A stretch of 64,000 bases of DNA from Octopus sinensis (Eukaryota). The DNA lies in NCBI RefSeq assembly GCF_006345805.1, contig NC_043002.1, positions 3,410,001 to 3,474,000 of the forward strand, read 5' to 3'. The position numbers and the translations under genes are program-made. The first letter of the stretch is position 1, and each line of letters begins with the position of its first letter. The notes below the pieces were generated by a model. The model saw only the letters and a program-made list of their open reading frames with translations, was not told the origin of the DNA and searched no databases. This document shows, piece after piece, positions 6,484 to 62,466 of this stretch.

Positions 6484-6528
<45 letters not shown>

Positions 6529-12177: not shown

Positions 12178-12221
<44 letters not shown>

Positions 12222-40400: not shown

Positions 40401-43400
40401 TTGTTGTATTTAGGAGGAGACAAAGTACTGACCAGATTATAACCACACACACACACACATATATATAATATAGTTATGGTATATTCTATTAAGAATGTAG
40501 TAGAGTTCAATATAAAGCTTGTCCACCTTCAGATTTCACTCTGTGCTGTCCAGTTGTAGTATTATATGGACATCCAGGTTTGTGTTTGGGCATCTGTCAT
40601 GTGTGAATAGGTAACTGCAAAAATTGGAGATATTTAAAAATTTTTTTACTCACTACAATTGTTTCCATGCAATGTAGTTCTCCAGGTATTTGATTATGCA
40701 ACTGTTTCCCTGCATTATGAGATCTGGTTGTGTAAATATTGTCTCCATAATTTTCAGTTATATTTTTAAAATTATATTGTATTTTTTGAAAACTACAATA
40801 CTGAATATTTAGTATGTTCAGTTTCTTTATGAATTCTGTTGAGGAATAATTAATTTGGTGGGAATATGATAATTAAAATTTCCTTTCGACAATCATGTTT
40901 CCAACTTTGCCCCAATCAATATATTGCAATTTACATTGCATCAGGTGTACAGTCACTGAATTAGTATAGATAAACGTCTAAATATACAGTTTTTCGTAAA
41001 CCCATATTTGACCAGATCTAAATCTGAATTAATACAGCCATTGTTGTTCTATCATTTGATTTGAATAAAATGAATCGGTGCTAATTTTAAAATAACCCAA
41101 AAATATTAAAGCCAAAGACGACAGGGAAAAGAAATTCCAACAAACCATAGCCATCTGCTAGTTCTTCTGTTTTTACTCATTCCTATTCACCTTGTGCTTT
41201 TTACGTGGCACCCTGGTACCTCATCACCACTATTTTATCTCTTTCCAACTAACCTCCTACCCTCTCTCTCTCTTCTATAGTGGGATTAGCCATGTAACTC
41301 CTTTACAGCCAGAGACCTTTTGTTCTGGCCCCTTCCCTCACACTTTACCCTCTTGTCTCCTAACATAGAGCTGCCTCCTCAATCTTGAAGGAAGTGTTAT
41401 TCTTGCAAGTTGCATGGTGACCGACTGCACTGGTGATGGTGCCATGTAAAAAGCACCCGGTACACTCTGTAGAGTGCTTGGCGTTAGGAAGAGCCTCCAG
41501 CTATAGAAACCATGCCAAAACAGACATCGGACCACCACTATGCAGTTCTTGGACCTGTTGCATCCATCCAACCCAGGCTAAATGGAAGTGGATGGATATT
41601 AAAAGATAAAAACAGATGACTCTTCAGACTGACTGGCGCTTCATCGGTTACGATGACAACAAGGGTTCCAGTTGATCCAATCAATGGAACAGCCTGCTTG
41701 TGAAATTCAGGTGCAAACAAGTGGATGGAACACCCGACAGACAGGCACACCCTTAGCATAGTTCTCGGGGAGAGTCAGCATGACACACAGAGTGTGACAA
41801 GGCTGCTGGTCTCTTTCAATTACAGCTACTACTTGGTTTTGCCAGCTGAGTGGACTGGAGCAATGTGAAATGTCTTGCTCAAGGACACATGTTACCTGGA
41901 ATTGAACTCAAAACCTTCCAACCATTAGCCAAATGCCCTAACCACTAAGCCATGCATTTTCAGATAAGTATTTACACACACACACAAAATATGTAATAGG
42001 CTTACATTTTACGTAAGTATGAAGTACTCACATGGAAGGCAGACGAGAGAGAGAGATCACTGCAGATGGAACAAACAATCTGTGTTGCAAGTAACCATTA
42101 ACTACAGTAATATTCTTTGTCTGCAGCTGAACCTCTTAAAGCTTTGGTTGTTTTTGAGTGGTGAGAAGAGGTTCTAATCTTCTTCTGATCTTTAAGCATT
42201 AGAATCCGTTATTAATCAATTTGATATTAGAAACCCCCACTCAAGAGAACTCATTAGTTTAACACTTGAGAGATTGTTTTAATTAGATGATTAGTAGTGG
42301 AATGGTAAGGCTCAGTCAAAAATCTCTTCAAAATTCCTTCAGACAATTCTTTTATTAATCTTTGTTTCTCGTAAGTAAACTTTGAACTTTCCAATTCCAT
42401 CCACTTTGTGGCTATTTCTCCACAGTATTTTCTTTTGTGGTAGACTTGTACCAAAACCAATGAATAAATTCTTGTGAGAAATCTTTGCACTTTGGTACCC
42501 TTTTCCCAAATTTATTCATAAGAAATGCTCTCAATGTCAAAGAACTGAACACGTTTTAAAATATGTGAAAATGTTCTCCAATTTTTTTTTTTTTTACAAA
42601 GTTTTATTGCATTCCACATTATTTGTTTGCATGCTTATGCATCCACATGTGAATCTACATGTGCATGTGATCCCACATGTGTATGTGTTCATATAGAAAC
42701 GCAAATACATTTAAATGTTATTCTCAAAACATAATTTTTCCTTTTCATTTTGCTTTCTATATTCGCACAACTGAAGTATGTATAATATATGTATTAATTT
42801 CTTTTATTTAATAATAGCGATAATAATAATACATTACTGAATTCTATATAATATATTGATATATTTCATTTAATACAATTACTGCTGCTAATAATAATAA
42901 TAATGATTTCTTTTGAGAAAGTTAACGTTATACCATTGTATGTTTATAGATATAAAGAATATCACAAATTCTCAGGAATAAAATTAATTTTTCTTCTCAT
43001 GGAAACCTTTTAACAGATCTAACGTAGTTTACAGATTGGACAAAAATAAAATTATTGCCAGCCAGCAAATATTATTTAATCTAAAAATTATTTTTTTTAT
43101 TTTCAATGTAATTTAATATTAATAAATTTAAATAATTATTATATTTTTTAAAAAAATCAATATTTTTTTCTATTTTTTTATAGAAATACGTAAAATTATT
43201 CTTGTTATAATTTAAAAGAAAAAGAAGTTTTTTCAGACTTTTCAATCCAGATGAAGCTGATTCTGTTGGTCCATTTTATACTATTTTTAATGAATGAAAA
43301 TTTATTTTCAGGTTTACCCAAAATAGACAATCGGCCTAAGGATGAAATTCTCCGGGAAAAGATGTTGCACATATTGGAATCTGCTTATCCCAACATTTTG

Positions 43401-46400
43401 GCAGTTGAAGATATCTGCCGGTGAGTTTATTCCAAATGTATATTTAGTTTGGTTTTCAACTGATGTCTTTTAGTTTAGCAAGGTTGAATATTTTCTTTAA
43501 AATGGAACTGATTTCATACAGTACAGTACCCAAATTCATAATTTAGTCTTCGTTAATTGTAGTTTGTTGCCTCATTAGCATAGGTTAATGAAAATTTCTT
43601 CATTTTCCTCTCTCTTCCACATTCATCATTCCAATCTATTTCGCCAAACTTTCTATGGATCTCAGATATTCTTTGGCACATCTTTGTAATGGAAACCGTT
43701 ACTTAGCACTTGTTACGTATCTAGGACTGTCCTACCTTGTTATGTACTAACGACTATCCCTTTCTCCACAAACTCTCAAGTTTGCATTTGATATTAATCA
43801 ATAACAAGTTCATTCTCAAATGAACCTTGTCTGTCTTGCTAATTTACTGATTATTCTAACCATTTTATGATCCAGGAATCAGCAACTCTATTTTAGCTTT
43901 TTCCACAGTTGAAGAATATTTGTCTCTGCTAGAATTCTTTTATTATTCAACTATATTTCACCCTGTGCTGGTGGCACATAAAAAGCACCATCTGAACGTG
44001 GCCGATCCCAATGCCACATTGACTGGTTTCTGCGCCGGTGGCATGTAAAAAGCACCAACCGATCGTGGCCGTTGCCAGCCTATCTGGCACCTGTGCCAGT
44101 GGCACGTAAAAAGCACCCACTACACTCACAGAGTAGCTGGCGTTAGGAAGGGCATCCAGCTGTAGAGACACTGCCAGATCAGATTGAAGCCTGATGCAGC
44201 CACTGTCTTCCCAGACCTCAGTCAAACTGTCCAACTCATGCCAGCATGGAAAACAGACGTTAAACGATGATGATGATATATTTCACCCATATGTCATACA
44301 GCACATACAATACATCTACACACAACTCCCTTATTGCTCCTTACTGTGTGTGTGCATACTGAGTATATATATTAATGCTGTTTAAAGATGTTTAATCTTT
44401 TTTCTGTTAGTGTTTTGCTTCTAAGACTGATTTGTTCCAAAGTCATTAACCTTTAATCTTCTATGAAGTTTATACAGTTAGTCATCTGTCAATAATTACT
44501 AACAGATGGCTAATTGATTGGATAATTTATGAAGTTTTTGTTGCCTCAAAGTGATTTGAATCTTCAAACGCCAAAAGTCTTAAAATCTTGCCATTTCATC
44601 TGCCAACCATCTCTGGTAACAGGCAGCAATTCTTCCAATAATCTCTTCAATGATGTCAAAATCCATTTGTCCAGTCACTAATTGTACGGAGGGGGGGGGG
44701 GCATCAGTAGAAATAATCACTGTAATGAATGATAATTATTACTGTCTTACTGCCATGGAATCAGCCGACCTTCATTATTCTGCCACCTCTCACTGCTACT
44801 TCTGTCTTTTATTGTTCACAGATGTTATTTATTCAGTGAAAACAAGTTTCAAGAGATTTTAATAACAGTTTTACTGTTTCGGGTTCAGTGTTTAACATGC
44901 ATTAATAGATATGATTATTTAGTTAAAGCTCATCTTCTCAGTTGGAAAATAAAGACTTGACCTCTTCAACACCATTCCGACAGTCTTTAGCAACTCTCTA
45001 CAGTGCCACACTCTATGTATGAGACATTTCTCTCAGTTCACCTTCCACCTTTCCAAGCCAGGTGTGCCTCCTGCCATCCCTCCTTTTACTCTCCAAGCTT
45101 TGATTTTTCCCAATCAGGGTCCATCTTAATGCCATCTTTGGTATCTTGTCTCAATGCTGCTGCTGCTGCTGGTTGTTTTTCTTTGAAGACTCACATTTAT
45201 AAAACCAGATGTTCTTTCAGATATATACTGCAACTGTTTTTCCATGGTGAGATTTTCACACTAACAGCATGAGTTGAATCTGTATTTATCTTGTTGTGTA
45301 CAAGTTGAAATCTTCGTAGATAGAGACGATGACGTTCTGTCTGTCGCTGGCTTACAATAGCGTCTTCATATTATGTTTGGCTTGGCTGTCGTCTGCCTTT
45401 CGAAATGAAACATAGTTGAGTAAGCTCTGTGTGGTCTCCGACCAAGACCTTAAAAGGTCTTAAGCCGAAAGACGTTGAATCGTGATATGATCAGCCTATT
45501 TAAAGAGTTAAGATGGCTCAAATGAAAAGTCCTATCCGAAAGCCGTGATTGGTCAGTTTACACACTGGCATGAAATAAGTAGAGAGACAGACCGCGCTTA
45601 GATGCTAACCAATCAGATCAGTGGACACAACAAGGTTAAACTAGCCAAAGATGTTTGTAATCTCAAACGAGATCTTTCCTAATGTTTTTCTTAAACAGTG
45701 AAAACAGCAATGAAGACAGCAAAAGATACCGATTCTTTGCTATATTTCTTGGAATGCCCTCTTATTTTATAAACCTTCATATGTGTGGGTGGAGGTATGC
45801 ATGTTTCATAGTGTTTCTGTGTATGTCAGGGGCTGTGGTTTCTGGTATGTTAATGTGTGTGTTTTTTAGCAAAGTAGGGAGGAAGACAGTATCACGAGAC
45901 CATCAAAGAAATGGTCATGTTCAGCATGCAGAAAGGAGTCCATAGAAATGCTCTAAGATGTACCCAATGAAAACAATGGGCACACAAGAGGGGTGATAGG
46001 ATCCCCTGCAAGCTAACAGAGATGGTAGAGTTCATATGCAGCTGGTGTACCAAGGCAATAAGCCTTAGAAGTGCTCAGGAAATAAATTTTCTTAAATTCC
46101 CAGATGACTCCCTAGAAATAATTGATAGGTTTTTGTTTTTCATCCAGGTGACCAAATTAGCAGTGAAGGTGATTTTCCGAAAGTGTGGTAACTAGAATAT
46201 AAGCTCTAGAAAGATTAGGGGTCTATTACCTCTACTGGCAGCAAAAAGCTTATTCTTCAAGGTCAAGGTCTGATTGTAAGATGTTTGTGTGTAAAGTAAT
46301 GTTGCACGATAGCAAGATGTGGGCCTTAGATGTGGAATACCAGATTGGCATCTGCGCTTGCATTCAAGTTTTCTCTCTTCATGATACATGTTTATTTAAG

Positions 46401-46887: not shown

Positions 46888-46928
<41 letters not shown>

Positions 46929-48852
46929 TGTTAAAACAGTTTGTGATATCTGTTGTGCTGGTGCCACATAAAAAGGCATTGGTGAAAGTGCTACATAAAA
47001 ATCACCCAGTGCCACTCTGTAAAGTGGGTGGCATTAGGAAGGGCCCCTAGCTGTCATCATCATCATTGTTCGACTGTGGTCGAGACAATGGAATTTACCA
47101 TGCTACGCCAGACTTCACGGTCCATCACGGCATTACGGAGGTCCTGTTGCTGGATGCCTGTATTCCTGGAGATTACATCAGGGTAGGAGAGTGTGCGCCC
47201 TCTGGTATTGCGAGTAGATGGCTTCCAGAGGAGAAGAGTAGAAATTACCTCTTTTTCAGCTCTACAACAATGTCCAGCAAACTGGACTCTCTTACCTTTC
47301 ACAAGAGATGACACAGGTGGTAGTTTCCCATATATTTGCATTTTGGTTGGATGGCGCTTCCATGAGAGATTTTGAGCTCTCATAAGGAGGCGAGTGTAGG
47401 AACCAAGTCAAAACAGACTATGGAACCTGATGCAGCTCCTTTTGAGCTGTCCAACCCATGCCAGCATGGAAAACAGATGTTAAATGATGAAGGTGATGTG
47501 CAATTAAAAGTTGTGTGAACTCTAATGCCGAGGATGTTGACCTTCCATAGAAATATCAGCAACATAGATTAGTCAATAGTTTTAATGCATTTGTCATCTT
47601 AAACAAATGAAAATAAGTTTCTTGTCTGCCAGTATTTCACGGCTTAAATATCACAACCGATATCTCCTTGCTACATTGTGTGATCCACTTCAAGTCATGA
47701 CCCTTTTGGGGTTTAGAAGTTTAGATTTTCTACTTCAAAATTAGAGCTTGTCAAAAACGAAATGCTGAATAACCAACTTTATGTTGTGTAGTGACTTTCA
47801 TTACCTTCCTGGTTTATTATTTTATAGAATAGGAGCAAATCAGAAATGCTAGCATATTGACAAATATTAAATATCGGCCCTAAGTTTTTATTTTAAGTTC
47901 TACCATCAAATTTTGGGCCCAGGTGGAGGAAAAGTCCTTCTGGGCTCACTGTGTAATAAGTATGAGTTATATACCATAGCTTGGTTGGTTTCATTCCCCA
48001 CCACTCCCTAAAAATGTAATATTGTCTCTAACGAACTGTTGTTAATTTCTAGAATTACTGCTGCTGATGAAGTTATGGTCCGTGAACAGCTAAAAGAACT
48101 CCATACACGCAATTTGGTCACAGAAATGGAGCAGGGTGGATTCATGAGACACGTATTAGACGAGAAATCAGGTTACAATTTGATTTTTATATTTTACAAC
48201 TTTAAACAACAACTTTACAGGACTTCATTTTGGAATTAATTATCTTATTGAATTACTTGGAAAATACATTTTGGAAAACTTTATTAAAATGGTTTCCTTT
48301 CACAATTCTGTTGAAATAGCTGCAGCACAAATACACAAACACATCAAAATCAAATACCTGCTTAACCTTTAGCATTTAAATTGGATATTTCCAGCTTAAA
48401 TATTCCTCCTGTTTTTTGTTCAAACTGGCCAGATCCAGCCTCTTACACTTGGCCTACACTGTCCCTCTATTCTATCACATCATCAAAGTCCTCATACTGA
48501 GATAATACATGAATAATTCAAAAGTAATGTGAATGAATAAGCATTACATTTGACGGAGTAATCTGAATGCTAAAGCGTGAAACAAAATTTAGATAAGAAT
48601 TGCAAATAAAACAAGCAAAAGAAAACCCACAGAACATGGTAGGTCCATAATAAGAGATTAGTGACATAAATATTTGAACCCTTGCCCTCACCAACCTCAA
48701 CCAGTTGTACTGGCTAAAACAACCACCTCAAATATGCGGATTTATCGTCGTTAATAACACAAACACAATCTCCTAGAAACAGCCATAGAGATGCCAAATT
48801 TACATCTCAATGTGTGTTTATGTTCTACTTTAGGAATACATTGAAAGAAAAG

Positions 48853-48883
<31 letters not shown>

Positions 48884-51800
48884 CAGCCATGACCTTTAGC
48901 TGGCTGTTTTAAAAATAAAATTGATAAATCTTCAAGATAAGAGAAATAATGAGATTTGTGAAAAATAAAATGTCAACATTTTACAATGTTTAATACACAT
49001 ACAAACATTCTAATCACCATCTTATAAATTTATCTGTGGCAATCTTTATACTCAGTGTGGATGTAGTGTTAGAACGTTGTATTACTGATTCTCTCATATA
49101 AAAAAACACAGGAGTGGTGGCGTGGTAAGTAGCTTACCAACCACCTGGTTCTAGGTTCAGTTCCATTGCCTGGCACCTTGGACAAGTGTCTTCTACTAAG
49201 TTCTGGGGTCAGTTTGCTCGACTAAAGGTAGTGCTCCAGCATGGCCACAGTCAAATGACTGAAACAAGTAAAAGAATATCATTAGCAGAAGAGAATCGTC
49301 TGGCATGCATGGGAGAACTGTTAGATCACGATTTCAGCATACATATGCTTCATCAGGAACAGACATTTACTGACTACATGCCAGCAGAATTCCACCACCA
49401 ATGACGTTGAAAAATAGGGACTGTTCAATCACTGATGTCACAAATAAGGAGCAGGCTCTTTAGAAATAGATATCAGTGACAGCAGCACTATTAATATTGA
49501 ATGATACACATACACGCGCGTGCACATTTGTGTGAGTATAAAATTTAGGTTATGCTGTAGAAGCATCTCCAGAATAAAATCATCTATATAACATAATTAA
49601 TGTTATGTGAATTGTTAAGAAACCAGAAGCCGCAGTTTTTGTGTGCAAATAATCATTTTATAGATATATTGTATTAAACAACACTATATATATCATTGCT
49701 AAAACAAAATTTACCCAGAAGTGACCATGAGAGTGACAGATGTGCATTTCACTATTGTTGCAGCTTATCAATGTTCTGTACTTGTGTCACTTTCAGAACA
49801 AGATAGAATCAACCAATGGGAAGAGACAACTATGCATTGGTTTGTGAGAATGCTGCATTAGTTGGCCATAATGCTTCCCACTCGTCACTCTTTGCTAATT
49901 ATTATTAGTTGATATTTCCTTAATTTAGGTGGCAAGATGGCAGAATTGTTACTTTACCAGACAAAATGCTTAGCGGCATTTCTTCCAATTTTACATTTTG
50001 AGCTCAAATTCTGCCAAGGTCAACTTCGCCTTTTGTCCTTTTGAGATTAATAAAATAAGTACCAGCTAAACACTGGGGTCCATGTTATCAACTTATCCCC
50101 TCCCTTGAAATTGCTGGCCTTGTACCAAAGTTTGTAACCAATATTTCCTTAACTTTAGACAACCATTGTCATATTTATTCATTGTTTCATTGGAAAGAAA
50201 TTCTTGTGTTTGTTGTAAATTCTCACACCATGCTTTCATGGATTCTCTTGTAGAGGTACAACTCGTAAAACAGATGCCAACGATTGCTGCCAACCAACAG
50301 CCGACCATTGCTATCATCACTGCTATGTATTATGAAAAACTTGCTGTTGATGCCATGATGGAAAATAAGACGACATACATGAAATACAAAACAGAAGGTC
50401 TGTTGGTTCAATTCTATTCTTTTTAATGTTCTGAATTGTTTGTGAATAAAAAAAAAAAATTCTTTTCAGGCACTAACTAAGGGACATGCTCAAGTGGCTA
50501 TGGTCAAGCAACTGACAAGCATATCTGTGGAATTGAGCAGAATATTTGCTATAATGATATTTCTGCTTCAGCACTGACTCTGTCTGAAATGTAATGGAAA
50601 ATAGGTCAGTTTCAAAACACTGATGTCTAGGTGATAAAAGCAAAGTTTGAAGGGAACAGTGGTCATTTCCTTTGATTTCTAGATAGAAGCAAATAAGAAA
50701 TAGCACTGAGTTGTCAAATCATTGTTGTTTAATGTCTGCTTTCCATGCTGGCATGGGTTGGACGGTTTGACTGAGGACTGGCAAGCTAGGAGGCTGCACC
50801 AGGCTCCAATCTGATCTGGCAAAGTTTCTACAGCTGGATGCCCTTCCTAATGCCAACCACTCCAAGAGTGTAGCCTGAATGCCACCCAAAGGCTAGTATC
50901 TTAATATTTACATGAAGCTCTTAGTAAATTGATTGCTTGAGGCTTCATGGATAGACTTCGGAGAAATCAGTTTGTGCCATTTCTGTGAATATTTTGGGTC
51001 TCAGGAAATGCAAAAACAAAGATTGGTTTGATGGAAATATCTCAACTTCTGGACACCAAGCATAAATAACAGCAGAAATTGCTGGATCTTAATTTATCTG
51101 GAATGAATTGCTTGAAGGAAGAGGAAGCAAGTTATTTGAAGGACCAGAAATCAGTGGAAGAATGCATCGACTTGGGATGCTTCTATTTACAGAGCTCCAT
51201 CATCATCATCATTGTTTAACGTCCGCTTTCCATGCCAGCATGGGTTGGATGGTTCGACCGGAGTCTGGGAAGCCAGAAGGCTGCACCAGGCTCAGTCTGA
51301 TCTGGCAATGTTTCTACAGCTGGATGCCCTTCCTAATGCCAACCACTCCGTGAGTGTAGTGGGTGCTTTTTACGTGCCACCAGCACAGGTGCCAGACGAG
51401 GCTGGCAAACGGCCACGGTTGGATGATGCTTTTTACGTGCCACCGGCACGAAAGCCAGTCAGGGCGGCACTGGCAACTGCCACGTTCGGATGGTTCTCTT
51501 ATGTGCCACCAGCACTGGTATCACAGCTACAATTTCCATTCATGTTGATCGATTTTGATTTTTGATTTTTTGATCAATACAAATGAATCACTGCCATTCA
51601 AAGGTGTATTCACTGGCTGCTGGGGTGAGAATTCATTTTGGATTAATGCACAAAGATGAAACTACTGTTGGAGTAATCCTTGACCAAATTATATCCCTCT
51701 TTGGTCATAAAAAATGCCTTTAAACGATCAGGGCTGAAGACCCATCATGGAAATGCTATGAAATGTATTACAGTCTGATGCCTGCAATGAGAATATGGTT

Positions 51801-53650
51801 ACGTTTGAACCCAAGATAGACAACCATCTCTCTCACACACACTCTTGGGAGAGATTAGGCAGAGGCATGGCTCTGTAGTACAAAGTGTGCTTCTCAACTG
51901 CATGGTTCCAGGTTCAGTCCCACTGTGTGGTACCATAGGCAAGTGTCTTCTACTATAGCATCTGATCAAAGCCTTGGTAGACAGAAACTGAAAGAAGCCC
52001 ATCATGTATATTTTTTATAAATTTGTAAATAACACCCAAAGGCTGTAAATTTTGGAGAAAAGTGACCACATAAATCTTTTTATAATGACCGTAATTGTAT
52101 ATTTTATAATAATAATAATAATAATAGAAGCTCCAATTAAATCAACTAAACCTAAACAAATGACTGAAAAAAGATGGGCCTATATTATTATTATTATAAA
52201 AAAATGATATACAATTTACAGGCGCAGGAGTGGCTGTGTGGTAAGTAGCTTGCTAACCAACCACATGGTTCCGGGTTCAGTCCCACTGCGTGGCACCTCG
52301 AGCAAGTGTCTTCTGCTATAGCCCCGGGTCGACCAATGCCTTGTGAGTGGATTTGGTGGACGGAAACTGAAAGAAGCCTGTCGTATATATGTATGTATAT
52401 CATCATCATCATCATCGTCGTCGTTTAGCGTCCGTTTTCCATGCTAGCATGGGTTGGACGGTTCTGCTGGGGTCTGTGAAGCCAGAAGGCTTCATCAGGC
52501 CCAGTCAAATCTGGCAGTGTTTCTACGGCTGGATGCCCTTCCTAACGCCAACCACTCCGTGAGTGTAGTGGGTGCTTTTTACGTGCCACCCGCACTGGTG
52601 CCAGACAGAGCTGGCAAACGGCCACGAACGGATGGTGCTTTTTATGTGCCACCGGCACGAGGGCCAGGCGAGGCTGGCAACGGACACGAAACGGGGCGGT
52701 GCTGGCAACGGTCGCGAAACGGAAAGTTCTCTTACATGCCACCGGCACTGGTAACACATCTGCAATTTCCATTGATCGATTTCCATTGATGTATGTGTGT
52801 GTGTGTTTGTGTGTCTGTGTTTGACAACCGATGCTGGTGTGTTTCCGTCCCCGTCAATTAGCGATTCGGCAAAAGAGACCGATAGAATAAGTACTGGGCT
52901 TACAAAGAATAAGTCCCGGGGTCGATTTGCTCGACTAAAGGCGGTGCTCCAGCATGGCCGCAGTCAAAATGACTGAAACAAGTAAAAGAGAGTATATATA
53001 ATTTACAGTTGATTGCTACTGTCATGCAAGCAGTGTCATTCATTTCCAATGTTCCATGGAAACATGTCTGGCCATGTGTGTGTGTAAGGGGGGGGGGTAT
53101 TACTTTACTTGGAAACTGATGAGGGCTGGAGACTGAAAAGGTGTCTCACCATAAAAAATCTGCTTTGGTAAACTCCATCTAACTCATGCAGGAATAGAGA
53201 AATGGACGTTAAAACGATAGTGATGATTATTCTACACACACACACACACACACAACTATGTATCTTTATGTGTATATATAGAGATACTTGTGAATAACTT
53301 TCTCCTGGATTCCTTGAACAGTCTACTCTGTTGCAAACACGTCCACAAGGTTTCTTGTGGGAAGCTGTCACAATATCTTCTCACACCAACCCCACAGCTT
53401 TCTTTCTTCTGTGAGGTGTCACAATTTGTCAGAAGAGCCCCTACTCAAGGGAACCAGATCATACATAAGGAGATAGCAACTGAAATGTAAAATTTTAATG
53501 CACACATGCAGCTGTGTAACATATTTATGATGGTGATGATGATGATGATACATATTGGCCTAAGTTATTGTATACGCCTCCACATTGTCCAACATGATAA
53601 CCTACACACACACACACACACACACGCACACACACACACACACACACCAT

Positions 53651-53700
<50 letters not shown>

Positions 53701-56700
53701 CCGGCTCAAGCTACCGACCACTTGGGCAGTCGCTGAGGGCGCTGTGTGCTAGGGGGCACCAAGGAGGGTGTGACCATGACAACATTTCCAAGACTGTCAG
53801 CTTGTACATGTCAAAGTTCAGCTTGTCCAGGGCACCAGCAACCCTAGGGCAGCCTTAGACAGACACACACACACGCACTGACCCATACATACACGCACAC
53901 TGAAAGGGAAGAGCTGAAGGACCCTCCCCACCATCTCATCCATACTAAAACACAGGAAATAATTACATTTGAAATGGAGGCTGTTGGCTAGATTTAAAAA
54001 AAGTAAAAAGGTTTTAGATAAAGGGAGATAATCAACTAAGTTACAGATTTGTTATCTATCTGCACTGATAGAATTTTTTTCTCTTTCCCCCTCTGTTTGT
54101 GTGTATGTGTGTGTATATACATAGACACACTGATAAATTATATGAAAACAGATTGTTTTAATTTTTAAGTATTATGTAAAATATTTTATAAGCATAATTG
54201 AGGCAAATGTATGTCGACTTAGACTGAGTTACTAATTAGTTAAGATAGTAACAAATTAAGGTGCTGTGTTTGGTGTCTAATTGTAATATGAGAGTCTAAA
54301 GAACATAATTACAACTTATATTAGTAATTCCCTTTAAGTCATAGTATTATACATTTGTCTGCAAAGGAAATCCAGTGGAACAGAGATGTCGCCTGGTTTT
54401 GGCTGCTAAATTCAATTGGAATTTTGTGGCAGCCCCATCAGAAACAGCTACCAGACTGCATGTTGTCTGTACTAGAGGAAATAAGAGTAAAGTTGTTGGA
54501 AAACGGCATCCCTTTCATTAATGTAGTATTTATTATATTAGCTTTGGTATGTGTGACCATTTAAAATGGTTAGCATTAGGGTCATGTCTGTATAATGTGT
54601 CTGTATACACACACACACACACACACACACATATACTTTCAGTTGGATTGTGGAATGAGCATTGCTGAGAGGTAACAGTCTTGGCACAAGTGCACAGCCT
54701 TGACTGTAACAGGTCTATAACACTGGTATTCATTATCATCATCATCATCTTCGTTTAACGTCCGTTTTCCATGCTGGCATGGGTTGGACGGTTTGACTGA
54801 GGATTGGCGAGCCAGATGGCTGCACCAGGCTCCAATCTGACCTGGCAAAGTTTCTACAGCTGGATGACCTTCCTAATGCCACTCCAAGAGTGTAGTGGGT
54901 GCTTTTTACATGGCATGGGCCAGAAGACCTAGCATCGACCACGATTGGATGGTGCTTTTTACATGCTACCAGCACGGGGGTCATAACTACAATTTCCATT
55001 TTATTTGACTTTGATATTGATGTACTCGACTCAATAGGTCTCCTCATTGGGCTGGTTATGTGACACTGGTGTAAGCTACAGCTGTGAACTCACTTTATTT
55101 GCCAGGTCCTCTCAGTCACAGCATACCTCCAGAGGTCTCGGTCCCCTGTCTTGTGTATAAAATGTAACAAGTCTATATCAGTGGTACTATTCATGAATGA
55201 ATATGTTCTTTATTAAAAATTATTTGGTCAAATACCTACACAGAAAGGTTTGCTCAATTGTAAATCTTGTTGATAATTTAAAAATTAAAGAAGCCATCCC
55301 TTATCCTCATCAAATGCTTTCACTACAGCTGCTGAGTTGTGTGTGCTGCCATTTATTTTTGTTACAGCTTTTATGTTATAACCATTTTCTTTCACATTGT
55401 CTGTTGTGGCCTGTTTTCATGATATTCTTCATAAGAAGTTGCTGTGACCAAAATCTCAAATGCCATTTCTTTTATTTCTTTAGCAGTATTACTTTGGATC
55501 TTCTATCATAATTATTATTTAATAATCTTAGCTCTTTTTTATGTCTTTAATAGTCAAAAGACAAAAAGCAGATAATAATAATAATGGTTTCAGATTTTGG
55601 CACAAGGCCAGCAATTATGAGAAAGTGGGTAAATTGATTACATCAATCCCAGTGCATGACTGGTATTTATTTAATCGACCCCAAAAGGATGAAAAGTAAG
55701 GTAGACCTTGGTGGAATTTGAACTCGGAATGTAAAGACCAATAAAATGCCACTAAAGATTTAACCTGGTGTGCTCATGATTCTGCCAGCTCACTGCTTTT
55801 AATAATAATAATAATAATAATAATAGTAATAATGATGTGCTTATAGTACACAGTGTTCAGGTGCACTACATCTCGTTGGAAAAGGTTAAAAGAGAGGAGA
55901 AAATGCAGCAATAAGTGAAATAAAGAAGACAAAAACAAACCCAACAGTGTAAGCCAGAAGCACATACTCGGGGCCTCAGGATGAAACCCAGAAAGAGAGA
56001 AAATTAATGAGTAAAAGTCATAAAGAGGAAAGGGTTTGTAGGCGTGTCAGATGAAGTGTTGCTGAATTCCAGGAAGCATGGAATTTTCAAAGGATGCATT
56101 ATCTTGACAGCTAACAACTCATGTGGATAATTTGTTCCATGTTTTGACTATTTTGAATGTGAGAAAAATGTCATGGGGCCCCACATCTTTTTTATTTAAA
56201 AAATTTTTTCATTTTAATAATCCTGCATGGTTTTGAATTTTAAAAAAAGTGTTTGAAAGAATCTATTGAGTATAGAAAGATGGAACTAGAATGATAATAA
56301 ATAATGTATCTCTGTTGCCATTGAGAAAGTCTTTCAAAGTCAGTTGACCATTCCTTATATTGTTTCAGGTGAATCCAATGTGTACACAATTGGTTTTATT
56401 GGAGAACACAAAGTTGTTTCAACTAAACTCCCTGCTATTGGCCATGCAAGATCTGCTCAGATTTCTTCTGGAAACACCACAACAAGATTACTTGGTAAGG
56501 AAAGAAGTTGTTTTCTTTTTATGATCCTTAAATTATTAAATGTATTTATTTGTCCTGGTTACAAAAAGTATAAGTCTAACGTTTTGTGTTAAACATCTTT
56601 TAGTGTTTGTTTTCTATGTTGTTTTATATTATTTCCTGTTGAGAATTATTGGTGGCACCAATGTAATTAGGAGGGAAACTAAGTTGTAAGAGGAATTACA

Positions 56701-59700: not shown

Positions 59701-62466
59701 TGCCATGTGACAGGACTGAACCTAAAACTATGTGGTTGGAAAGCAAGCTGCATATGGCTCAAATGATGCTAAAAGATGTTGCACTCTGCTCTGAGTACAA
59801 TGCTTCTTGAAGCAGAAACAGCTGTAAGCTAATGAAAGTTATTATGTAACTCCCGTTCTTTTGTCAATCATACACGTGTGTGTACACACACACACACACA
59901 CAGACACACAGTTTCCATGTACCAGAATCCACTCAGAAGGCATTGGTTTGTCCCAAGTTTTATAGAAGACACTTCCTCGAGGTGTTCTACAGTGGAATTG
60001 AACCTGGAATTCTGTGGTTACAATGTAAACACAGTCACGCCTGTCCCCGTTTGCAGTGAGATCAATTTTACAACTGCTTTCTGCATTTGAAGCCGATACA
60101 CCTGGCATCCTTCCAAGCTGTTTTCTAACTGAACGCTTAGCTTTTGTTTTGCTATCTCCCTTCTGCTGTATACTGTTACATGTATCAAATGTTGTTGTAA
60201 GGTTTGCTGATGTTGAGCTGAGCTGTGTTATACAGAGAGGTTAGTCTGTACTCTTGATGTAGATATTTACAGGAGTGCTTCATTGTCTCGGTTTACAAAC
60301 ATCCTGTAGTTAACAATCAGAAACATGTTGTTTTATATCACACGTTTCAATATTAGGCATCTGTGGAGAGAAGATTGTCTAACACTCTACTTTCCTGTTA
60401 TTATTATTAGAGAGTTTAAAGCAGTGAGATGGCAGAGTGGTTAGCACACCAGGCGAAATGCTTAGTGGTATTTTGCCTGTCTTTACATTCTGAGTTCAAA
60501 TTCCGCAGAGGTGGATTTTGCCTTTCATCCATTTGGGATTGAGGAAATAAGTACCAGTTATATCACTGGGGTCGATGTAATCAACTTGCCTTCTCCCCCA
60601 AAATTCCAGGCCTTGTGCTTTCAATAGAAAGGATTATTATTAGAGTTTGTCACTCAATTTGTTACGGTGGTGGGCTGGCAGAGCCATTAGCATGCCAGGC
60701 AAAAATGCTTAGTGGCATTTTATCCATCTTTATGTCCTGAGTTCAAATGCTGCTGAGGTCGACTTCACCTTTCATCCTTTTGGGGTCAATAGAATAAGTA
60801 CCAGCTAACTAGCAGTTGTTTACATCAACCCCAATGCTCGACTAGGGCCTATTTTATTGCCCCTGAAAGGATAAAAGGAAAATTTAACTACAGCAGAATT
60901 TGAACTAAGATCTTAAGGTCGGAACATTGATTCTGTGTTTCAGGACATATTTACAGCAACCAAAAGAGTGTCTCGACACCAGTTAGTGCTTATGTCAGGA
61001 CAAGAACCAACAAACTCTTCTTGCTTTCTTTTCTACTACTCTTTCAACCCAGACATTTTCTTGGGATGGTGGTCAGTCATGTTCTTAGAACAATCTGGAT
61101 TCTTCTTCTTCTTCTTCTCTCAGCTGTTTTTAACAAATCTGCAAAACTGAAGCATTGAGCTGACTTAACATTGAAACTGATTTTGTAATTAAAATACTGT
61201 ATTATTTTGTTTCCTACTGTCTTGTCAAGTAATTTATTGAGCATTTTTAAAAAGGTTAAGGGAGCAGACCCCTACAGAAAATCTGGAGGGAAGGGACCGT
61301 GAAGCAGATATGGTTATACTAAACCAATATCTGGCATCCTCTGAGGCTGTGCAGATGCCACAAACATATTGACTTATTCTTTCATGACATTTTCATGAAT
61401 AGAGACATGGTCAGTGTACACAAGGCTAGGCACTTGCTTCTGGACTCAGCCCAGGCACAGCAGAGCAAATGCTTAACTTACTAGTCTCTCTAATACTACC
61501 AACCAAAATAGGAAAAAGTCAATCATTATTTTAATTGCAAGAATGGGGGAGGGGGGTTAAAAGAGAAAGTCCATATTTTATGTAAAATTTCTTTTTTTTC
61601 TTCTTAATTCTTTGCATTATTTCAACTTCTTCAAAAAATTTCAGTTCATTGAATGTATTTTCTAGAATTTGTGAAAATATTTAATGTAATGGAGATGTGT
61701 TTATTGACTTGTCTCTATTTCAGGTACATTCCAGAACATAGAGCATGTGTTTGTCGTCGGTGTTGCAGGTGGAGTTCCTTACTACACAGACTATTACAAA
61801 CACGTTCGTCTAGGGGATGTGGTGATATCTCGAGGGGAAGACAGAGATGTCATCTATTATTATTGTGAGAAAATCCTGAAAAACAAAAGTGGAGACTTGC
61901 AGTATCTTCACAAGACATTTGCTCCTAAAGATAGCAGTTTACAACAAACTGCAAGGAAGATTGTTGAGACCAGTAAAAATAATCCCGAATCCAAACCATG
62001 GGAACTCTATTTGGAGGAAGGTCAGAAATTATTGCAAGGTCAAGAAGTCCACTTTATGCGTCCCTCTTCCACTACTGACCGTCTTTATATGAATATTGGA
62101 GAAGACAACGTCATTGAAGTCGAACACCCACAACCACCAGAGGAGATTGCTTCCAATTTCGATCCAGACAAGCCGAGGGTTCATTACGGTGTCCTTGGTT
62201 CAGGCCGGCCTGTGGTCAAAAGCGATGCCATCCGGCTTGATTTTGCTGGGAAATATAACATCAAAGCTTTCGATACTGAATTTGATCAAGTTCTTGAGTC
62301 TATTATTGGCAATCGGAAAGACAGTTTCATGTTTATTCGTGGCATATCTGATTATACCGATGGCTCCAAGAACAAAGAATGGCAACCTTATGCCGCTCTT
62401 ACAGCTGCTGCTTTCATGAAAACAATTATAAAGGCCTTAACCAATCCTTTAGTAGATGATTTCTAA
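1857..62466 (+). CDS. Spliced gene, 5'-incomplete: micro-exon-encoded acidic/Pro-rich N-terminal region + winged-helix-like domain + nucleoside phosphorylase/nucleosidase (PNP_UDP_1-like) domain; about 560 aa within the window if all 20 exons are included
   Basis: 20 AG/GT-bounded exons join in one open frame ending at TAA 62464-62466. Core exons give GLPKIDNRPKDEILREKMLHILES...IAIITAMYYE...VVGVAGG...RLGDVVIS...IRGISDY...WQPYAALTAAAF. The core gene is secure; co-inclusion of the micro-exons is inferred from phase and strand, not from transcripts. Confidence 0.85.
3044..3521 (+). mobile_element. Composite element: tRNA-like SINE head (about 3283-3345) plus a 3' tail duplicated in inverted orientation at the 5' end (Penelope-like arrangement)
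   Basis: About 60-bp inverted repeat 3048-3108 vs 3428-3493; 17-bp direct repeat aaccttaatttatattt at 3027 and 3522; box A/B-like TGGTGTAGTGG and GAGTTTGATTCC. Confidence 0.65.
4155..4184 (+). CDS. Micro-exon 2 (30 nt, or 27 nt from 4158): (A)EECPLPDII
   Basis: ttccctttgtaTAG CAG tandem acceptor, G|GTATGT donor; paralogous to 4476-4505. Confidence 0.75.
4476..4505 (+). CDS. Micro-exon 3 (30 nt, or 27 nt from 4479): EDERPLPDVI
   Basis: Long T/C tract then tAAG AAG acceptor, G|GTGCGT donor; shares CTCCCTGAT-TYATTG with exon 2; TGCATG at 4537. Confidence 0.7.
5020..5295. repeat. Fold-back repeat (about 130-bp arms, short loop); the same family occurs singly at about 26075-26275
   Basis: 5041 ttgccaacataacatggcagtcctggtttagg... 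is reverse-complementary to ...cctaaaccaggactgccacgttttgttggcaa at 5247-5278; the right arm and its flank recur at 26088-26270. Confidence 0.85.
5396..5750 (+). mobile_element. tRNA-derived SINE, family A (other copies about 49112-49275+, 51857-52010+, 52221-52992+ split by a family C copy, 58652-58820+, 59440-59755-, 30805-30900-)
   Basis: Box A/B-like TGGCTCTGTGG and GGTTCAGTTCC head; shared body gcaagtgtcttctactatagc...ggaaactgaaagaagc; 3' ggtgctccagcatggcc. Confidence 0.85.
6222..6869. repeat. Near-perfect palindrome (about 230 bp paired per arm, 12-nt loop) with a minisatellite expansion in the left arm
   Basis: 6222-6409 is the reverse complement of about 6681-6869; 6591-6630 pairs with 6643-6682; 6410-6590 is an unpaired (A)n(TA/CA)nCAAGA(A/G)GA array. 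Confidence 0.95.
8172..8725. repeat. Interspersed repeat, unclassified (fragment also at about 50470-50555)
   Basis: cactaagggaca(a/t)gctcaa...gtcaa(a/g)caactgac...gtgg(t/a)attgagcagaatatttgct present at both sites. Confidence 0.7.
10508..10537 (+). CDS. Micro-exon 4 (30 nt): EEEIQTTYRK
   Basis: ttttatctttcattcAG acceptor, G|GTAGGT donor identical to most array exons; phase 1-1. Confidence 0.7.
10597..10810 (+). mobile_element. tRNA-derived SINE, family B (other copies about 8745-8930+, 9390-9590+, 36035-36230+, 49925-50140+, 55600-55795-, 60420-60635+, 60665-60810+)
   Basis: Recurrent gagctggcagaat...gaaatgcttag...ctgagttcaaatt...gactttgcctttcatcctttcggggtcgataaattaagtaccag. Confidence 0.85.
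11593..11622 (+). CDS. Micro-exon 5 (30 nt, Pro-type): AENLPPPSFM
   Basis: cttttgtcttataaAG acceptor, G|GTAGGT donor, LPPP motif, TGCATG at 11644. Confidence 0.8.
12181..12218. repeat. (TG)n microsatellite; others include (CA)n 2031-2059, 4030-4091 and 53585-53699, (TA)n about 17430-17465 and 34375-34410, (GA)n 46887-46928
   Basis: Read directly from the sequence. Confidence 0.95.
14593..14625 (+). CDS. Micro-exon 6 (33 nt, acidic type): VEEVVNDADIE
   Basis: tttctgttccAG acceptor shared with four paralogues; G|GTAGGT donor. Confidence 0.85.
14913..16181 (+). mobile_element. Full-length degenerate mariner (Tc1/mariner, DD34D) DNA transposon
   Basis: TA target duplications at 14911 and 16182. 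About 30-bp TIRs: TTGGGTCATCCCATAAATAAT left, ATTATTTATGGTATGACCCAA right. Transposase from ATG 15098 (MEVTKEHIRHIL) to about 16117 with GQ*VPHKL, TGDKKW, YQDNAWPH and HPPYSLDIAPSDYHLF (34 residues between the last two Asp). Disrupted by stops and frameshifts. Confidence 0.95.
16600..16860 (-). mobile_element. Highly degraded RTE-type LINE 3' fragment
   Basis: Minus-strand conceptual translation FSHIIRTQKL...GQQR*NWSDAIKN*IG resembles the RTE C-terminal FFGHIxR...GRQRxxWxDxIK pattern. Confidence 0.45.
17341..17367 (+). CDS. Micro-exon 7 (27 nt, Pro-type): EDLPPPVGV
   Basis: tttttgttttacattaatAG acceptor, G|GTAGGT donor; 27/27 nt identical to 23460-23486. Confidence 0.85.
17920..18330 (-). 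mobile_element. Degraded RTE-type LINE 3' fragment
   Basis: Minus strand: WAATKRIEH*LAVAQRAME...REHIQNE...KFCWAGHVAGFPDKRWTCAVAKWY...PPGSLPQW, matching the RTE post-RT region (WAGHVAR...RW...GRPP.RW). The + strand ORF 17807-18439 is its antisense shadow. Confidence 0.8.
18655..18693 (+). CDS. Micro-exon 8 (39 nt, acidic type): VEEVVSDVDVDVE
   Basis: gtttctgttccAG acceptor, G|GTAGGT donor; in-frame 6-nt GATGTT expansion relative to paralogues. Confidence 0.85.
19485..19511 (+). CDS. Micro-exon 9 (27 nt, Pro-type): EDLPPPIDE
   Basis: ttttattttacatgactAG acceptor, G|GTAGGT donor, TGCATG at 19533. Confidence 0.85.
22974..23003 (+). CDS. Micro-exon 10 (30 nt, acidic type): VEEVSDIDFD
   Basis: gtttctgttccAG acceptor, G|GTAGGT donor; in-frame 3-nt deletion relative to paralogues. 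Confidence 0.85.
23460..23486 (+). CDS. Micro-exon 11 (27 nt, Pro-type): EDLPPPVGV
   Basis: ttttgtttcactttaacAG acceptor, G|GTAGGT donor, TGCATG at 23508. Confidence 0.85.
23991..24023 (+). CDS. Micro-exon 12 (33 nt, acidic type): VEEVVSDIDPD
   Basis: gtttttgttccAG acceptor, G|GTAGGT donor. Confidence 0.85.
25791..25823 (+). CDS. Micro-exon 13 (33 nt, acidic type): AEEVISDTEID
   Basis: tttctgttccAG acceptor, G|GTACGT donor. Confidence 0.8.
26004..26045 (+). ncRNA. Minimal type I hammerhead-ribozyme-like motif (probably degenerate)
   Basis: TCTGTG-CTGATGA-a-GGG(aaataa)CCC-g-GAAA-tga-TA-CACAGA: perfect 6-bp stem I, both core boxes, 3-bp stem II, collapsed stem III. Confidence 0.45.
26487..26803. 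repeat. Diverged inverted repeat (about 110-bp arms, about 95-nt spacer)
   Basis: acctttaagcaatacagat...gatgtcaatgaataaagaca...atcactctatgt vs its reverse complement acatagagtgat...tgtctttatttattgacatc...atctgtattgtttaaaggt. Confidence 0.8.
28291..28397 (-). promoter_or_regulatory. Candidate antisense Pol II core promoter (CCAAT, palindromic E-box, TATA-like, Inr-like)
   Basis: CCAAT 28393; TGTCACGTGACA 28362-28373; minus-strand TATTTAAA 28325-28318; TCAGT repeats 28-32 nt downstream on the minus strand. Confidence 0.35.
29108..29483 (-). mobile_element. tRNA-derived SINE, family D (degenerate copy about 41625-41950)
   Basis: Minus strand begins GGAGGCGCAATGACCCAGTGGTTAGGGCAGCAGACTCGCGGTCATAGGATCGCGGTTTCGATTCCC (box A and box B). 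Confidence 0.85.
29997..30026 (+). CDS. Micro-exon 14 (30 nt, diverged Pro-type): EDKFSAPIIV
   Basis: ttttttttcttatcAG acceptor, AAGAC start like Pro-type exons, G|GTAGGT donor, GCATG at 30051. Confidence 0.75.
33770..34208 (-). mobile_element. SINE-like family C with (CAT/TGA)n tail and internal 60-66-nt tandem units. Strand convention: + when the catcat...aacgtccg end comes first. Other copies about 6925-7215+, 20431-20700+, 21040-21195-, 31565-31930-, 41380-41610-, 43955-44277-, 46945-47500-, 50720-50875+, 51198-51570+, 52404-52790+, 54735-55045+, 56905-57090+, 57650-57755-
   Basis: Shared core tttctacagctggatgcccttcctaacgccaaccactcc and end catcatcat...tttaacgtccgttttccatgctagcatgggttggacgg; it explains the recurring FLQLDALPNANHS pseudo-ORFs. 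Confidence 0.9.
37672..37686 (+). CDS. Micro-exon 15 (15 nt): GMTAD; contains an in-frame ATG (37674), a possible start of a 417-aa short isoform
   Basis: ctctttattctctaattaccatgcAG acceptor, consensus G|GTGAGT donor, phase 1-1, TGCATG at 37703. Confidence 0.75.
43312..43420 (+). CDS. Core exon (109 nt): GLPKIDNRPKDEILREKMLHILESAYPNILAVEDICR; start of winged-helix-like domain
   Basis: tttattttcAG acceptor, CG|GTGAGT donor, open frame, phase 1 to 2. Confidence 0.9.
45860..46400 (+). mobile_element. Degraded RTE-type LINE internal fragment
   Basis: With frameshifts: KWSCSACRK...RCTQ*KQWAHKR...FICSWCTKAI, LEIIDRF...GDQISSEG, LPLL...KVK...VMLHDSKMWAL (RTE consensus MLHGSETWAL). Confidence 0.75.
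47054..47385 (-). mobile_element. 5'-truncated RTE-type LINE with (TGA)n tail, nested in a SINE-like repeat
   Basis: ORF 47063-47383: QIYGKLPPVSSLVKGKRVQFAGHCCRAEKEVISTLLLWKP...RGRTLSYPDVISRNTG...DREVWR; tail tcatcatcatcat at 47054-47066 on the + strand. Confidence 0.85.
48053..48171 (+). CDS. Core exon (119 nt): ITAADEVMVREQLKELHTRNLVTEMEQGGFMRHVLDEKS
   Basis: gttaatttctAG acceptor in phase 2; AG|GTTACA donor (weak, but required for phase with the next exon); overlaps ORF 48039-48239. Confidence 0.85.
50254..50397 (+). CDS. Core exon (144 nt): EVQLVKQMPTIAANQQPTIAIITAMYYEKLAVDAMMENKTTYMKYKTE; first strand/helix of the PNP-like fold
   Basis: ttctcttgtAG acceptor, AG|GTCTGT donor; IAIITA-x-x-x-E motif typical of PNP_UDP_1 nucleosidases. 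Confidence 0.9.
56369..56494 (+). CDS. Core exon (126 nt): GESNVYTIGFIGEHKVVSTKLPAIGHARSAQISSGNTTTRLL
   Basis: tattgtttcAG acceptor, G|GTAAGG donor, phase 1-1, open frame. Confidence 0.9.
61724..62466 (+). CDS. Terminal coding exon (743 nt): GTFQNIEHVFVVGVAGG...DDF*; main body of the nucleoside phosphorylase-like domain
   Basis: gtctctatttcAG acceptor; in frame with the 239-aa ORF 61747-62466; motifs GVAGG, RLGDVVI, GVLGSG, IRGISDY, WQPYAALTAAA. Confidence 0.95.

Follow-up and report, generated by a model that had tools for sequence, protein, structure and literature searches.

An octopus orthologue of the CG12065/H14E04.2 family: a putative regulated nucleosidase with a winged helix and a micro-exon-encoded linker

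What kind of protein is encoded in a 64,000-nt stretch of the Octopus sinensis genome in which motifs of nucleoside-cleaving enzymes follow a winged helix, and does it side with nucleotide-degrading immune effectors or with housekeeping nucleosidases? A first-pass annotation of this stretch (hereafter the window; all positions are window coordinates and all exons lie on the + strand) had placed a fusion of winged helix-turn-helix (wHTH) and PNP_UDP_1-like domains in the interval 43312-62466 and had likened it to immune effectors. We find that the window holds most of LOC115212809, which sequence comparison identifies as the cephalopod orthologue of the CG12065/H14E04.2 family, and that the interval 43312-62466 covers no more than the constitutive 3' portion of a gene that spans the entire window. 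We propose that the protein is a regulated N-glycosidase of adenine nucleotides, most probably ATP or dATP, a reading to which we give a probability of roughly 55%. As a locus it is a plain orthologue in a family that earlier work had singled out, not a new system.

The window is AT-rich eukaryotic DNA throughout (GC fraction 0.29-0.45). A prokaryotic-style reading of its open reading frames (ORFs) was rejected, as none is longer than 239 aa and the region is a spliced eukaryotic gene. The catalytic motifs quoted in the first-pass annotation are spread over five separate ORF fragments that join at canonical AG/GT borders, and all of them are present in the resulting exons (Table 1): GVAGG starts at 61759, RLGDVV at 61807, GVLGSG at 62188, and WQPYAALTAAA at 62380, while the Glu codon of IITAMYYE lies at 50334-50336, the Asp codon of IRGISDY at 62350-62352, and the stop codon at 62464-62466. 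Together with 13 coding bases at 37674-37686 (ATGACTGCAGACG), the five exons give a 1,254-nt frame of 417 codons starting MTADG, the same frame that had been described before. Its exon translation is 100% identical to isoforms X46-X48 of O. sinensis LOC115212809, and its orthologues number hundreds in sequence searches, with E-values down to ~1e-180, which places the observation far beyond chance. The 417-residue MTADG isoform is a truncated protein model. The annotated LOC115212809 products (481-714 aa) and the orthologues of other phyla (typically 560-600 aa) all begin with an extra conserved domain of ~150 aa, none of which is encoded within the window. This third domain is therefore encoded upstream, so that the gene runs off the 5' end of the window, and MTAD belongs to an internal cassette exon.

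For the architecture of the complete protein we used an AlphaFold2 model of a 589-aa orthologue that is 99% identical to the octopus protein over the shared part, built from a 54-sequence alignment (predicted local distance difference test score, pLDDT, 82.5; predicted template modelling score 0.80). The model comprises an N-terminal alpha/beta domain (residues 5-150) of six strands, two helices, and a final strand, a disordered segment (161-179), a winged helix of three helices and a beta hairpin with pLDDT above 90 (185-244), and a PNP-fold domain (252-580) that contains an inserted subdomain of ~110 aa. Pfam HTH_69 matches residues 14-73 of the 417-aa frame at 36.8 bits (cut-off 27), and PNP_UDP_1 (PF01048) matches residues 98-249 at 24.6 bits against a gathering threshold of 25.1, which some orthologues pass (P0100 at 25.3). 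By Pfam and by the model alike, a HTH_69-type winged helix sits directly upstream of the PNP-fold domain in one polypeptide. The fusion itself and the ~60-aa helix-helix-helix-wing segment of the first-pass annotation are thus borne out.

The N-terminal domain, which that annotation had missed, carries the signature VMTP..KIER..GGxHxG..INK...FPRDYVGFIKKxMK and is predicted mostly at pLDDT 80-97 in a separate 250-residue model that also includes the wHTH (pLDDT 85.6 overall). In scans of 29 N-terminal fragments, no Pfam or PADLOC family was found to match this domain; weak Death-effector-domain matches to five of the 29 (best E-value 1.2e-3) were rejected, the predicted fold being mostly beta. 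Foldseek searches of PDB and BFVD gave the domain no structural neighbour, with credible matches covering the wHTH only and long alignments at a root-mean-square deviation (rmsd) of 13-21 Å, and P450 matches to this region from a full-length profile search of PDB were spurious. Neither the N-terminal domain nor the wHTH had a relative in motif-seeded scans that covered 185,579 bacterial and archaeal genomes and IMG/VR. Apparent proteins with the N-terminal domain only, and odd architectures that add, for instance, Methyltransf_FA, calpain, or Ras, proved to be fragmentary or merged gene models. In Pfam, PADLOC, PDB, and BFVD, the protein showed no tie to an immune sensor or signalling module of a recognised kind (CBASS, Detocs, NLR, Death, TIR, EAD).

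The PNP-fold domain retains the residues expected of an enzyme. Foldseek against PDB matches it to MTAN or futalosine hydrolase in all of the top 50 entries (E-values ~1e-11, template modelling (TM) scores ~0.75), which makes it a clear member of the fold; a full-length profile search of PDB gave marginal MTAN matches (E-values 0.01-0.04), and a single-sequence search chance matches only. In a MAFFT alignment of the octopus family with E. coli MTAN and two PNP proteins of Agrobacterium pTiBo542, MTAN Glu12, Arg193, and Asp197 align with Glu279, Arg547, and Asp551. The same Asp aligns with D472 of Cap17 and D353 of DtcC, and the published D472A and D353A substitutions abolish the function of these effectors. 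Glu279, Asp551, YTxGxIG, K319, TRLLG, GxAGG, and GD are invariant in a cross-phylum alignment that covers mollusc, annelid, crustacean, wasp, Drosophila busckii CG12065, C. elegans, Trichinella, Echinococcus, rotifer, and nematomorph sequences. In these alignments the domain keeps an intact nucleosidase catalytic dyad under strong purifying selection. A catalytically dead scaffold, in which the PNP fold would serve only binding or oligomerisation, could explain the subthreshold PNP_UDP_1 score and a variable column where MTAN has Glu174; the invariance of Glu, Asp, G-x-A-G-G, GD, and TRLLG across phyla that split more than 500 million years ago is typical of an active enzyme and makes such a scaffold highly improbable.

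The family is broad and already on record. A search seeded with a Caenorhabditis orthologue retrieved the C. elegans member (P0290), 'CG12065 [Drosophila busckii]' (P0357), and the mollusc orthologues together, and the C. elegans and D. busckii members align over their full length to the octopus orthologue at 33% and 47% identity. Identity to octopus is ~65% within molluscs, ~50% in arthropods, and 33-47% in nematode and fly. Among named sequences, full-length orthologues occur in molluscs, annelids, a nemertean, a bryozoan, chelicerates, crustaceans, insects, nematodes, a nematomorph, a rotifer, and flatworms, and most species show one gene of the family. No full-length deuterostome or non-bilaterian orthologue appears among the named matches of this non-exhaustive survey; the family is probably restricted to protostomes, because slowly evolving deuterostomes would be expected to fall within the identity range of the listed orthologues. 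The protostome-wide distribution agrees with the earlier suggestion of a core that is conserved and uncharacterised, not new.

Rousset et al. 2023 listed three members, D. melanogaster CG12065 (Q8MRM6), Apis A0A7M7MVF0, and C. elegans H14E04.2 (H2L0A5), and described the family as a Cap17-clade PNP domain with Zα. In their large tree, the orthologues of arthropods and nematodes nest within the Cap17/Detocs ATP-nucleosidase clade; ATP nucleosidase activity was demonstrated in that work only for fungal NLRN and sponge DDAN domains. Our literature search from 2024 on found no functional study of CG12065, H14E04.2, or HTH_69 and no 'ATP nucleosidase' follow-up. CG12065 mRNA was bound by 15 of 20 RNA-binding proteins tested (PMC4617965), and the CG12065 protein is present in a SUMO-enriched immune-challenge proteome (PMC4592996). 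The octopus gene is orthologous to these genes, has the same HTH_69 wHTH plus PNP architecture, and is likewise uncharacterised. It differs in being a cephalopod, hence lophotrochozoan, member, whereas Rousset et al. 2023 named arthropods and nematodes only, and in an array of 15 micro-exons (three of them candidates); the conserved N-terminal domain is not mentioned in that paper, and the wHTH does not pass the Zα signature tests described below.

In the nematodes Ascaris (P0313), Litomosoides (P0321), and Thelazia (P0331), gene models fuse the family to a C-terminal S-adenosylmethionine-dependent methyltransferase of Erg6/SMT type, as found by our own Pfam scan for the first two and taken only from a precomputed Pfam list for the third. 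The cosmid neighbour of H14E04.2 in C. elegans is strm-1 (H14E04.1). These fusions suggest a conserved linkage or operon, or else merged gene models.

Whether the PNP-fold domain is of effector or housekeeping type was addressed from several sides. Among library hidden Markov models (HMMs), matches were obtained with PADLOC's CBASS 'PN-superfamily effector' model (32 bits, 9.8e-9), with its DtcC model (PDC-M60C, 1.8e-6), and with the NCBIfam MTAN equivalog (NF004079), which spans the whole domain at 37 bits (2.4e-9), far short of its cut-off of 169. Run in the other direction, an HMM of the animal PNP domain scores 53.1 bits on the HNH-PNP-EAD7 protein of pTiBo542, 26.0 on the neighbouring Detocs effector DtcC (misnamed DtcA in the first-pass annotation), and 7.6 on E. 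coli MTAN. A tblastn search of 72,556 plasmids ranks the HNH-PNP-EAD7 gene first (26% identity, 96% coverage, 2e-9), next to a PDC-M60A/B/C (Detocs) operon, and finds a Borreliella MTAN at 34% coverage (2e-3). A profile search of 1.84 billion representatives returned 8,911 matches at E-values of 1e-3 or below, 346 of them at 1e-30 or below; the best non-orthologous PNP matches (150-210 bits) include an Elsinoe PNP-NB-ARC protein, a metagenomic PNP-NB-ARC-TPR protein, a PNP-EAD1 protein, and fungal proteins in which the PNP domain occurs two or three times. The octopus family and the pTiBo542 defence PNPs have a C-terminal W/YQxYAA motif in common, which MTAN lacks. In a neighbour-joining tree of 29 domains (200 bootstraps, comparators chosen by similarity), the animal family is monophyletic (100% bootstrap) and the MTAN pair separate (100%). 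Profile scores, tblastn, the architectures of non-orthologues, WQxYAA, and the published tree support an affinity of the family with the effector clade, and with it a PNP domain that is more similar to defence-type and fungal-NLR PNPs than to housekeeping MTAN, as the first-pass annotation had proposed.

The comparison with these relatives also marks out what is particular to the octopus family. With Cap17 and DtcC it shares the PNP/MTAN fold, the catalytic Asp and Glu, W/YQxYAA, and the matches to the PADLOC effector and DtcC models, and it differs in pairing this fold with an N-terminal domain and a wHTH where the bacterial proteins have a TPALS-SLOG or receiver module, in a D-x-(E/A/G) motif for E-M-E, in extra insertions, and in being a single eukaryotic gene rather than a member of an operon. 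Outside its orthologues, the octopus PNP domain has its closest relatives in the PNP_UDP_1 domains of fungal NLR-like proteins and of the sponge Death-domain protein DDAN, which reach 150-210 bits on the family profile; the octopus family lacks their NB-ARC, TPR, Death, or EAD modules and falls outside these groups in the neighbour-joining tree.

Several observations on these relatives deserve record in their own right. In Agrobacterium pTiBo542 (L001), positions 5632-12484 hold a Detocs-like operon with PADLOC matches PDC-M60A/B/C, that is, a 1142-aa sensor, a receiver 'buffer', and a receiver-PNP effector, directly preceded by the HNH-PNP-EAD7 fusion gene, which is annotated only as 'HNH endonuclease'. 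The PNP query finds matches in 13 Agrobacterium plasmid records, and 12 of the 13 carry this annotation. Fungal and metagenomic proteins of up to 1754 aa (P0200, P0209, P0213-P0218) contain two or three tandem PNP_UDP_1 domains.

A housekeeping or regulatory alternative is a divergent MTAN that would clear methylthioadenosine (MTA), S-adenosylhomocysteine (SAH), or a related nucleoside in protostomes, with the N-terminal modules serving only to localise or regulate it. The MTAN equivalog spans the whole domain at 2.4e-9, the best solved-structure neighbours are all MTAN and arrange the catalytic Glu, Arg, and Asp in the same way, most species keep a single, highly conserved copy of the gene, and the ascarid and filarial models fused to an Erg6/SMT methyltransferase, an SAH producer, offer a weak lead in the same direction. 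Set against this, 37 bits is far from 169, the family profile scores 7.6 on E. coli MTAN against 26-53 on defence PNPs, the plasmid-borne Borreliella MTAN aligns over just 34%, and the nematode fusions may be merged neighbouring genes. The Glu174 column is not conserved, the domain has an extra ~110-aa subdomain, its C-terminal motif WQxYAA is of effector type, and the published tree puts the orthologues in the Cap17 clade. We regard an MTA/SAH nucleosidase as decidedly unlikely.

The winged helix raises the question of what, if anything, it senses. No Foldseek match of the 250-residue model reaches an E-value of 1e-3, and all credible matches cover ~60 residues of the wHTH. This segment superposes closely on solved Zα domains, with TM scores of 0.92 for ZBP1 (9j8g) and DLM-1 (1j75) at 1.0 Å rmsd, 0.85 for PKZ, and 0.81 for ADAR1, at E-values (0.04-0.09) no better than those of GntR, Rrf2, SmtB, and methyltransferase wHTHs; beyond weak AbiEi/Csa3-type matches, the wHTH is otherwise generic. 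Pfam z-alpha matches none of 29 orthologue fragments at E-values up to 10, nor the octopus protein at E-values up to 1, and a profile search of PDB lists ArsR/SmtB wHTHs first and no Zα among the 60 sequences listed. Aligned by hhalign to ADAR1 Zα, with a reference sequence not drawn from a database, the family reaches 1.8% probability, and the positions of the essential Asn173 and Tyr177 are occupied by R222 and K226, among the most variable columns (entropy ~3 bits). The residues that are invariant lie elsewhere: L194, E198, S199, Y201, P202, and N203 (LESAYPN, at the end of helix 1 and in the following loop), L228, and the wing Arg244. Helix 3 is hypervariable on its exposed face, and the wing reads G-x-(F/W/V)-V-R, without Pro-Pro-x-Trp. 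In Zα, the Asn and Tyr of helix 3 and the Trp/Pro-Pro of the wing are the residues that touch the Z-form backbone.

The octopus-family wHTH thus resembles Zα of ADAR1, ZBP1, and PKZ as a compact three-helix/beta-hairpin domain (rmsd 1.0-2.0 Å), and differs from it in lacking the helix-3 Asn/Tyr pair and in conserving LESAYPN and a wing Arg instead. It has a Zα-like fold and fails the sequence-profile and signature-residue tests for Zα. Since the invariant residues lie off the hypervariable recognition helix, their pattern suggests that the conserved face is an interdomain or partner interface rather than a nucleic-acid-reading helix. The 'nucleic-acid sensing' of the first-pass annotation finds no support in the conservation of a wHTH whose recognition helix is its most variable part and which has no Zα signature residues.

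The same evidence bears on the speculation of Rousset et al. 2023 that the family degrades (d)ATP upon sensing foreign nucleic acid, that is, that Zα would detect pathogen Z-DNA or Z-RNA and switch the effector on. The superposition on solved Zα at TM scores up to 0.92, the published annotation as Zα-like, and the effector-clade affinity all speak for such a trigger. The missing Pfam z-alpha match, the absence of Zα from 60 PDB profile listings, the 1.8% hhalign probability, Foldseek E-values no better than those of GntR, Rrf2, and SmtB, the invariant residues off the recognition helix, and a survey in which canonical Zα is absent from flies and nematodes (PMC11293857) make a Z-nucleic-acid-triggered effector very unlikely in our view.

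We propose instead that the C-terminal domain would act on a free adenine nucleotide (most likely ATP or dATP), whose N-glycosidic bond it would hydrolyse to yield adenine together with (deoxy)ribose-5'-triphosphate. The nearest domains, wherever assayed, cleave ATP or dATP to these products. The invariant Glu, aligned with Glu12 of MTAN, would act as general base, and the invariant Asp, aligned with Asp197 of MTAN and D472 of Cap17, would protonate N7. Because such an activity is potentially toxic, it would be held inactive, and the N-terminal domain and wHTH may form a regulatory or targeting module that releases it only when a ligand or partner binds. Since adjoining subunits complete each other's active sites in PNP folds, control by oligomerisation is plausible. 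The spliced linker would vary how the N-terminal domain is tethered to what follows it, and its micro-exons may add proline-rich docking motifs.

Several findings weigh against this proposal. Activity is known only for Cap17-clade domains outside the animal family, in which it is predicted from sequence. Library HMMs do not separate the two types cleanly, the MTAN equivalog scoring 37 bits and the PADLOC effector model 32. The neighbour-joining tree joins the family to effector and fungal PNPs rather than to MTAN and Amn at a bootstrap of only 50%, too low to decide clade membership by itself. The foremost solved-structure matches are all MTAN or futalosine hydrolase, and no Cap17 or DtcC entry figures among the PDB structure matches or the sequence-search matches, so that this search cannot discriminate between effector and housekeeping types. 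The column aligned with the ribose-binding Glu174 of MTAN is variable (E, A, G, or D) and the motif reads D-x-(E/A/G) rather than E-M-E, so that the active site differs from both MTAN and the bacterial E-M-E motif. A single-copy, strongly conserved family with no recognisable immune sensor fits a core cellular role at least as well.

This divergent active site leaves room for an N-glycosidase with another substrate, such as a cyclic or linear oligoadenylate, a molecule derived from nicotinamide adenine dinucleotide, diadenosine tetraphosphate (Ap4A), or adenine in RNA or DNA, with the wHTH and N-terminal domain recognising the substrate or a partner. D-x-(E/A/G) in place of E-M-E, the inserted subdomain, and the YTDY-KH insertion that the animal family has after GVAGG would suit this view, and a wHTH hints at a ligand that is a polymer or a partner; no observation speaks positively for another substrate, and we consider this alternative unlikely. 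An immune role of the protein is plausible, though we put it forward tentatively and think it less likely than not.

The octopus gene is distinguished within the family by its linker. Fifteen micro-exons of 15-39 nt lie at 1857-37686, all bordered by AG/GT, all of phase 1-1, and all multiples of three in length, so that any combination keeps the frame (Table 1); the length and content of the linker depend on which of the up to 15 are included. Chained with the five constitutive exons, they give the exact C-terminal 516, 510, and 505 residues of isoforms X46, X47, and X48; three of the fifteen (18655-18693, 19485-19511, and 22974-23003) are candidates only. Their peptides are acidic or proline-rich decapeptides (VEEVVxDxD, EDLPPPVGV, ExPLPDxI), and the VEEVV and EDLPPP exons alternate as pairs between 14.5 and 26 kb and look tandemly duplicated. 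The last of the array, encoding MTAD, is internal in X47 (...APIIVGMTADGLPK...) and skipped in X46 and X48. All insert exactly at the linker that AlphaFold2 predicts to be disordered (residues 161-179 of the 589-aa orthologue), and the array accounts for the at least 48 annotated isoforms. The first-pass view that the region upstream of the wHTH is tuned by splicing thus holds. At the same linker position (residues ~160-180 of P0004), other molluscs and horseshoe crabs have short extra segments (such as IPVEQFG, RNAEDIFG, and SGISPEMLMMG), and C. elegans H14E04.2 has a developmentally regulated cassette exon (PMC2265522); in view of both, alternative splicing of the linker may be ancient.

Table 1. 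Exons of LOC115212809 and copies of an interspersed repeat in the window.
Feature	Position	Strand	Content
Cassette micro-exon, 33 nt, phase 1-1	1857-1889	+	EEKIEAVQITS (linker); AG/GT borders, part of the X46-X48 chain
Cassette micro-exon, 30 nt	4155-4184	+	AEECPLPDII
Cassette micro-exon, 30 nt	4476-4505	+	EDERPLPDVI; paralogue of the 4155-4184 exon
Cassette micro-exon, 30 nt	10508-10537	+	EEEIQTTYRK
Cassette micro-exon, 30 nt	11593-11622	+	AENLPPPSFM
Cassette micro-exon, 33 nt	14593-14625	+	VEEVVNDADIE; in X46, skipped in X47 and X48
Cassette micro-exon, 27 nt	17341-17367	+	EDLPPPVGV; isoforms X46-X48 cannot distinguish it from its twin at 23460-23486
Candidate micro-exon, 39 nt	18655-18693	+	VEEVVSDVDVDVE; from splice-site and frame scan only, absent from X46-X48
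Candidate micro-exon, 27 nt	19485-19511	+	EDLPPPIDE; candidate only
Candidate micro-exon, 30 nt	22974-23003	+	VEEVSDIDFD; candidate only
Cassette micro-exon, 27 nt	23460-23486	+	EDLPPPVGV
Cassette micro-exon, 33 nt	23991-24023	+	VEEVVSDIDPD
Cassette micro-exon, 33 nt	25791-25823	+	AEEVISDTEID
Cassette micro-exon, 30 nt	29997-30026	+	EDKFSAPIIV
Cassette micro-exon, 15 nt	37672-37686	+	G-MTAD; ATG at 37674, the start presumed in the first-pass annotation
Constitutive exon	43312-43420	+	Linker end, wHTH helix 1, invariant LESAYPN, start of helix 2
Constitutive exon	48053-48171	+	wHTH helix 3 (variable 'recognition' helix) and beta wing; invariant Arg at 48147-48149
Constitutive exon	50254-50397	+	First strand of the PNP fold and IITAMYYEK; invariant Glu at 50334-50336 aligns with MTAN Glu12
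Constitutive exon	56369-56494	+	ESNVYTIGxIG...STKLP...GNTTTRLLG; invariant Y-T-G-I-G, K, TRLLG
Last coding exon	61724-62466	+	GVAGG, RLGDVV, ~110-aa family-specific inserted subdomain, GSG, AFDTEF, IRGISDY, WQPYAA, stop
SINE-like repeat copies	6928-7214, 20429-20670, 31628-31930, 33897-34212, 43960-44280, 51202-51515, 52411-52656, 54741-54970, others		

The introns hold further features. An interspersed repeat of ~310 bp that resembles a short interspersed element (SINE) is present in at least 12 intronic copies, in both orientations and at 78-86% identity, and gives rise to the recurring '...NPCQHGKQTLND...' pseudo-ORFs. An ORF of 106 aa on the - strand at 47063-47383, ending ...DLRNAVMDREVWRSMV, has no Pfam match; it resembles the C-terminal tail of ORF2 proteins of non-long-terminal-repeat retrotransposons and is probably what is left of a transposon in the intron. 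Microsatellites of (CA)n and (GA)n at 53560-53700 and 46890-46940 show as THTHTH and RERERE pseudo-ORFs.

The interest of the locus is moderate and lies mainly in the refinements given here and in an unusual micro-exon array. The orthologue survey widens the family to molluscs, annelids, nemerteans, bryozoans, flatworms, rotifers, and nematomorphs. The wHTH tests weaken the published idea of a 'Zα sensor', and the candidate regulatory elements are now the unannotated conserved N-terminal domain and the invariant patch formed by LESAYPN and the wing Arg. Should the family prove to be an active ATP/dATP nucleosidase under regulation, animals would have in it their first counterpart of the bacterial Cap17 and Detocs effectors that is a single gene and spans phyla, and one open to genetics in flies and worms. 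A bolder reading, more doubtful again than an immune role as such, is that all protostomes keep, in one strongly conserved gene, a bacterial-type nucleotide-depletion effector whose ATP/dATP-cleaving PNP domain would be gated by a new ligand-sensing fold of ~150 aa and by a non-Zα wHTH acting through LESAYPN and the wing Arg as an interdomain switch and not as a reader of nucleic acid, with cephalopods tuning the coupling by combinations of 15 micro-exons. Were this so, the family would represent a cell-autonomous abortive-infection or energy-shutdown switch of animals with a new kind of sensor.

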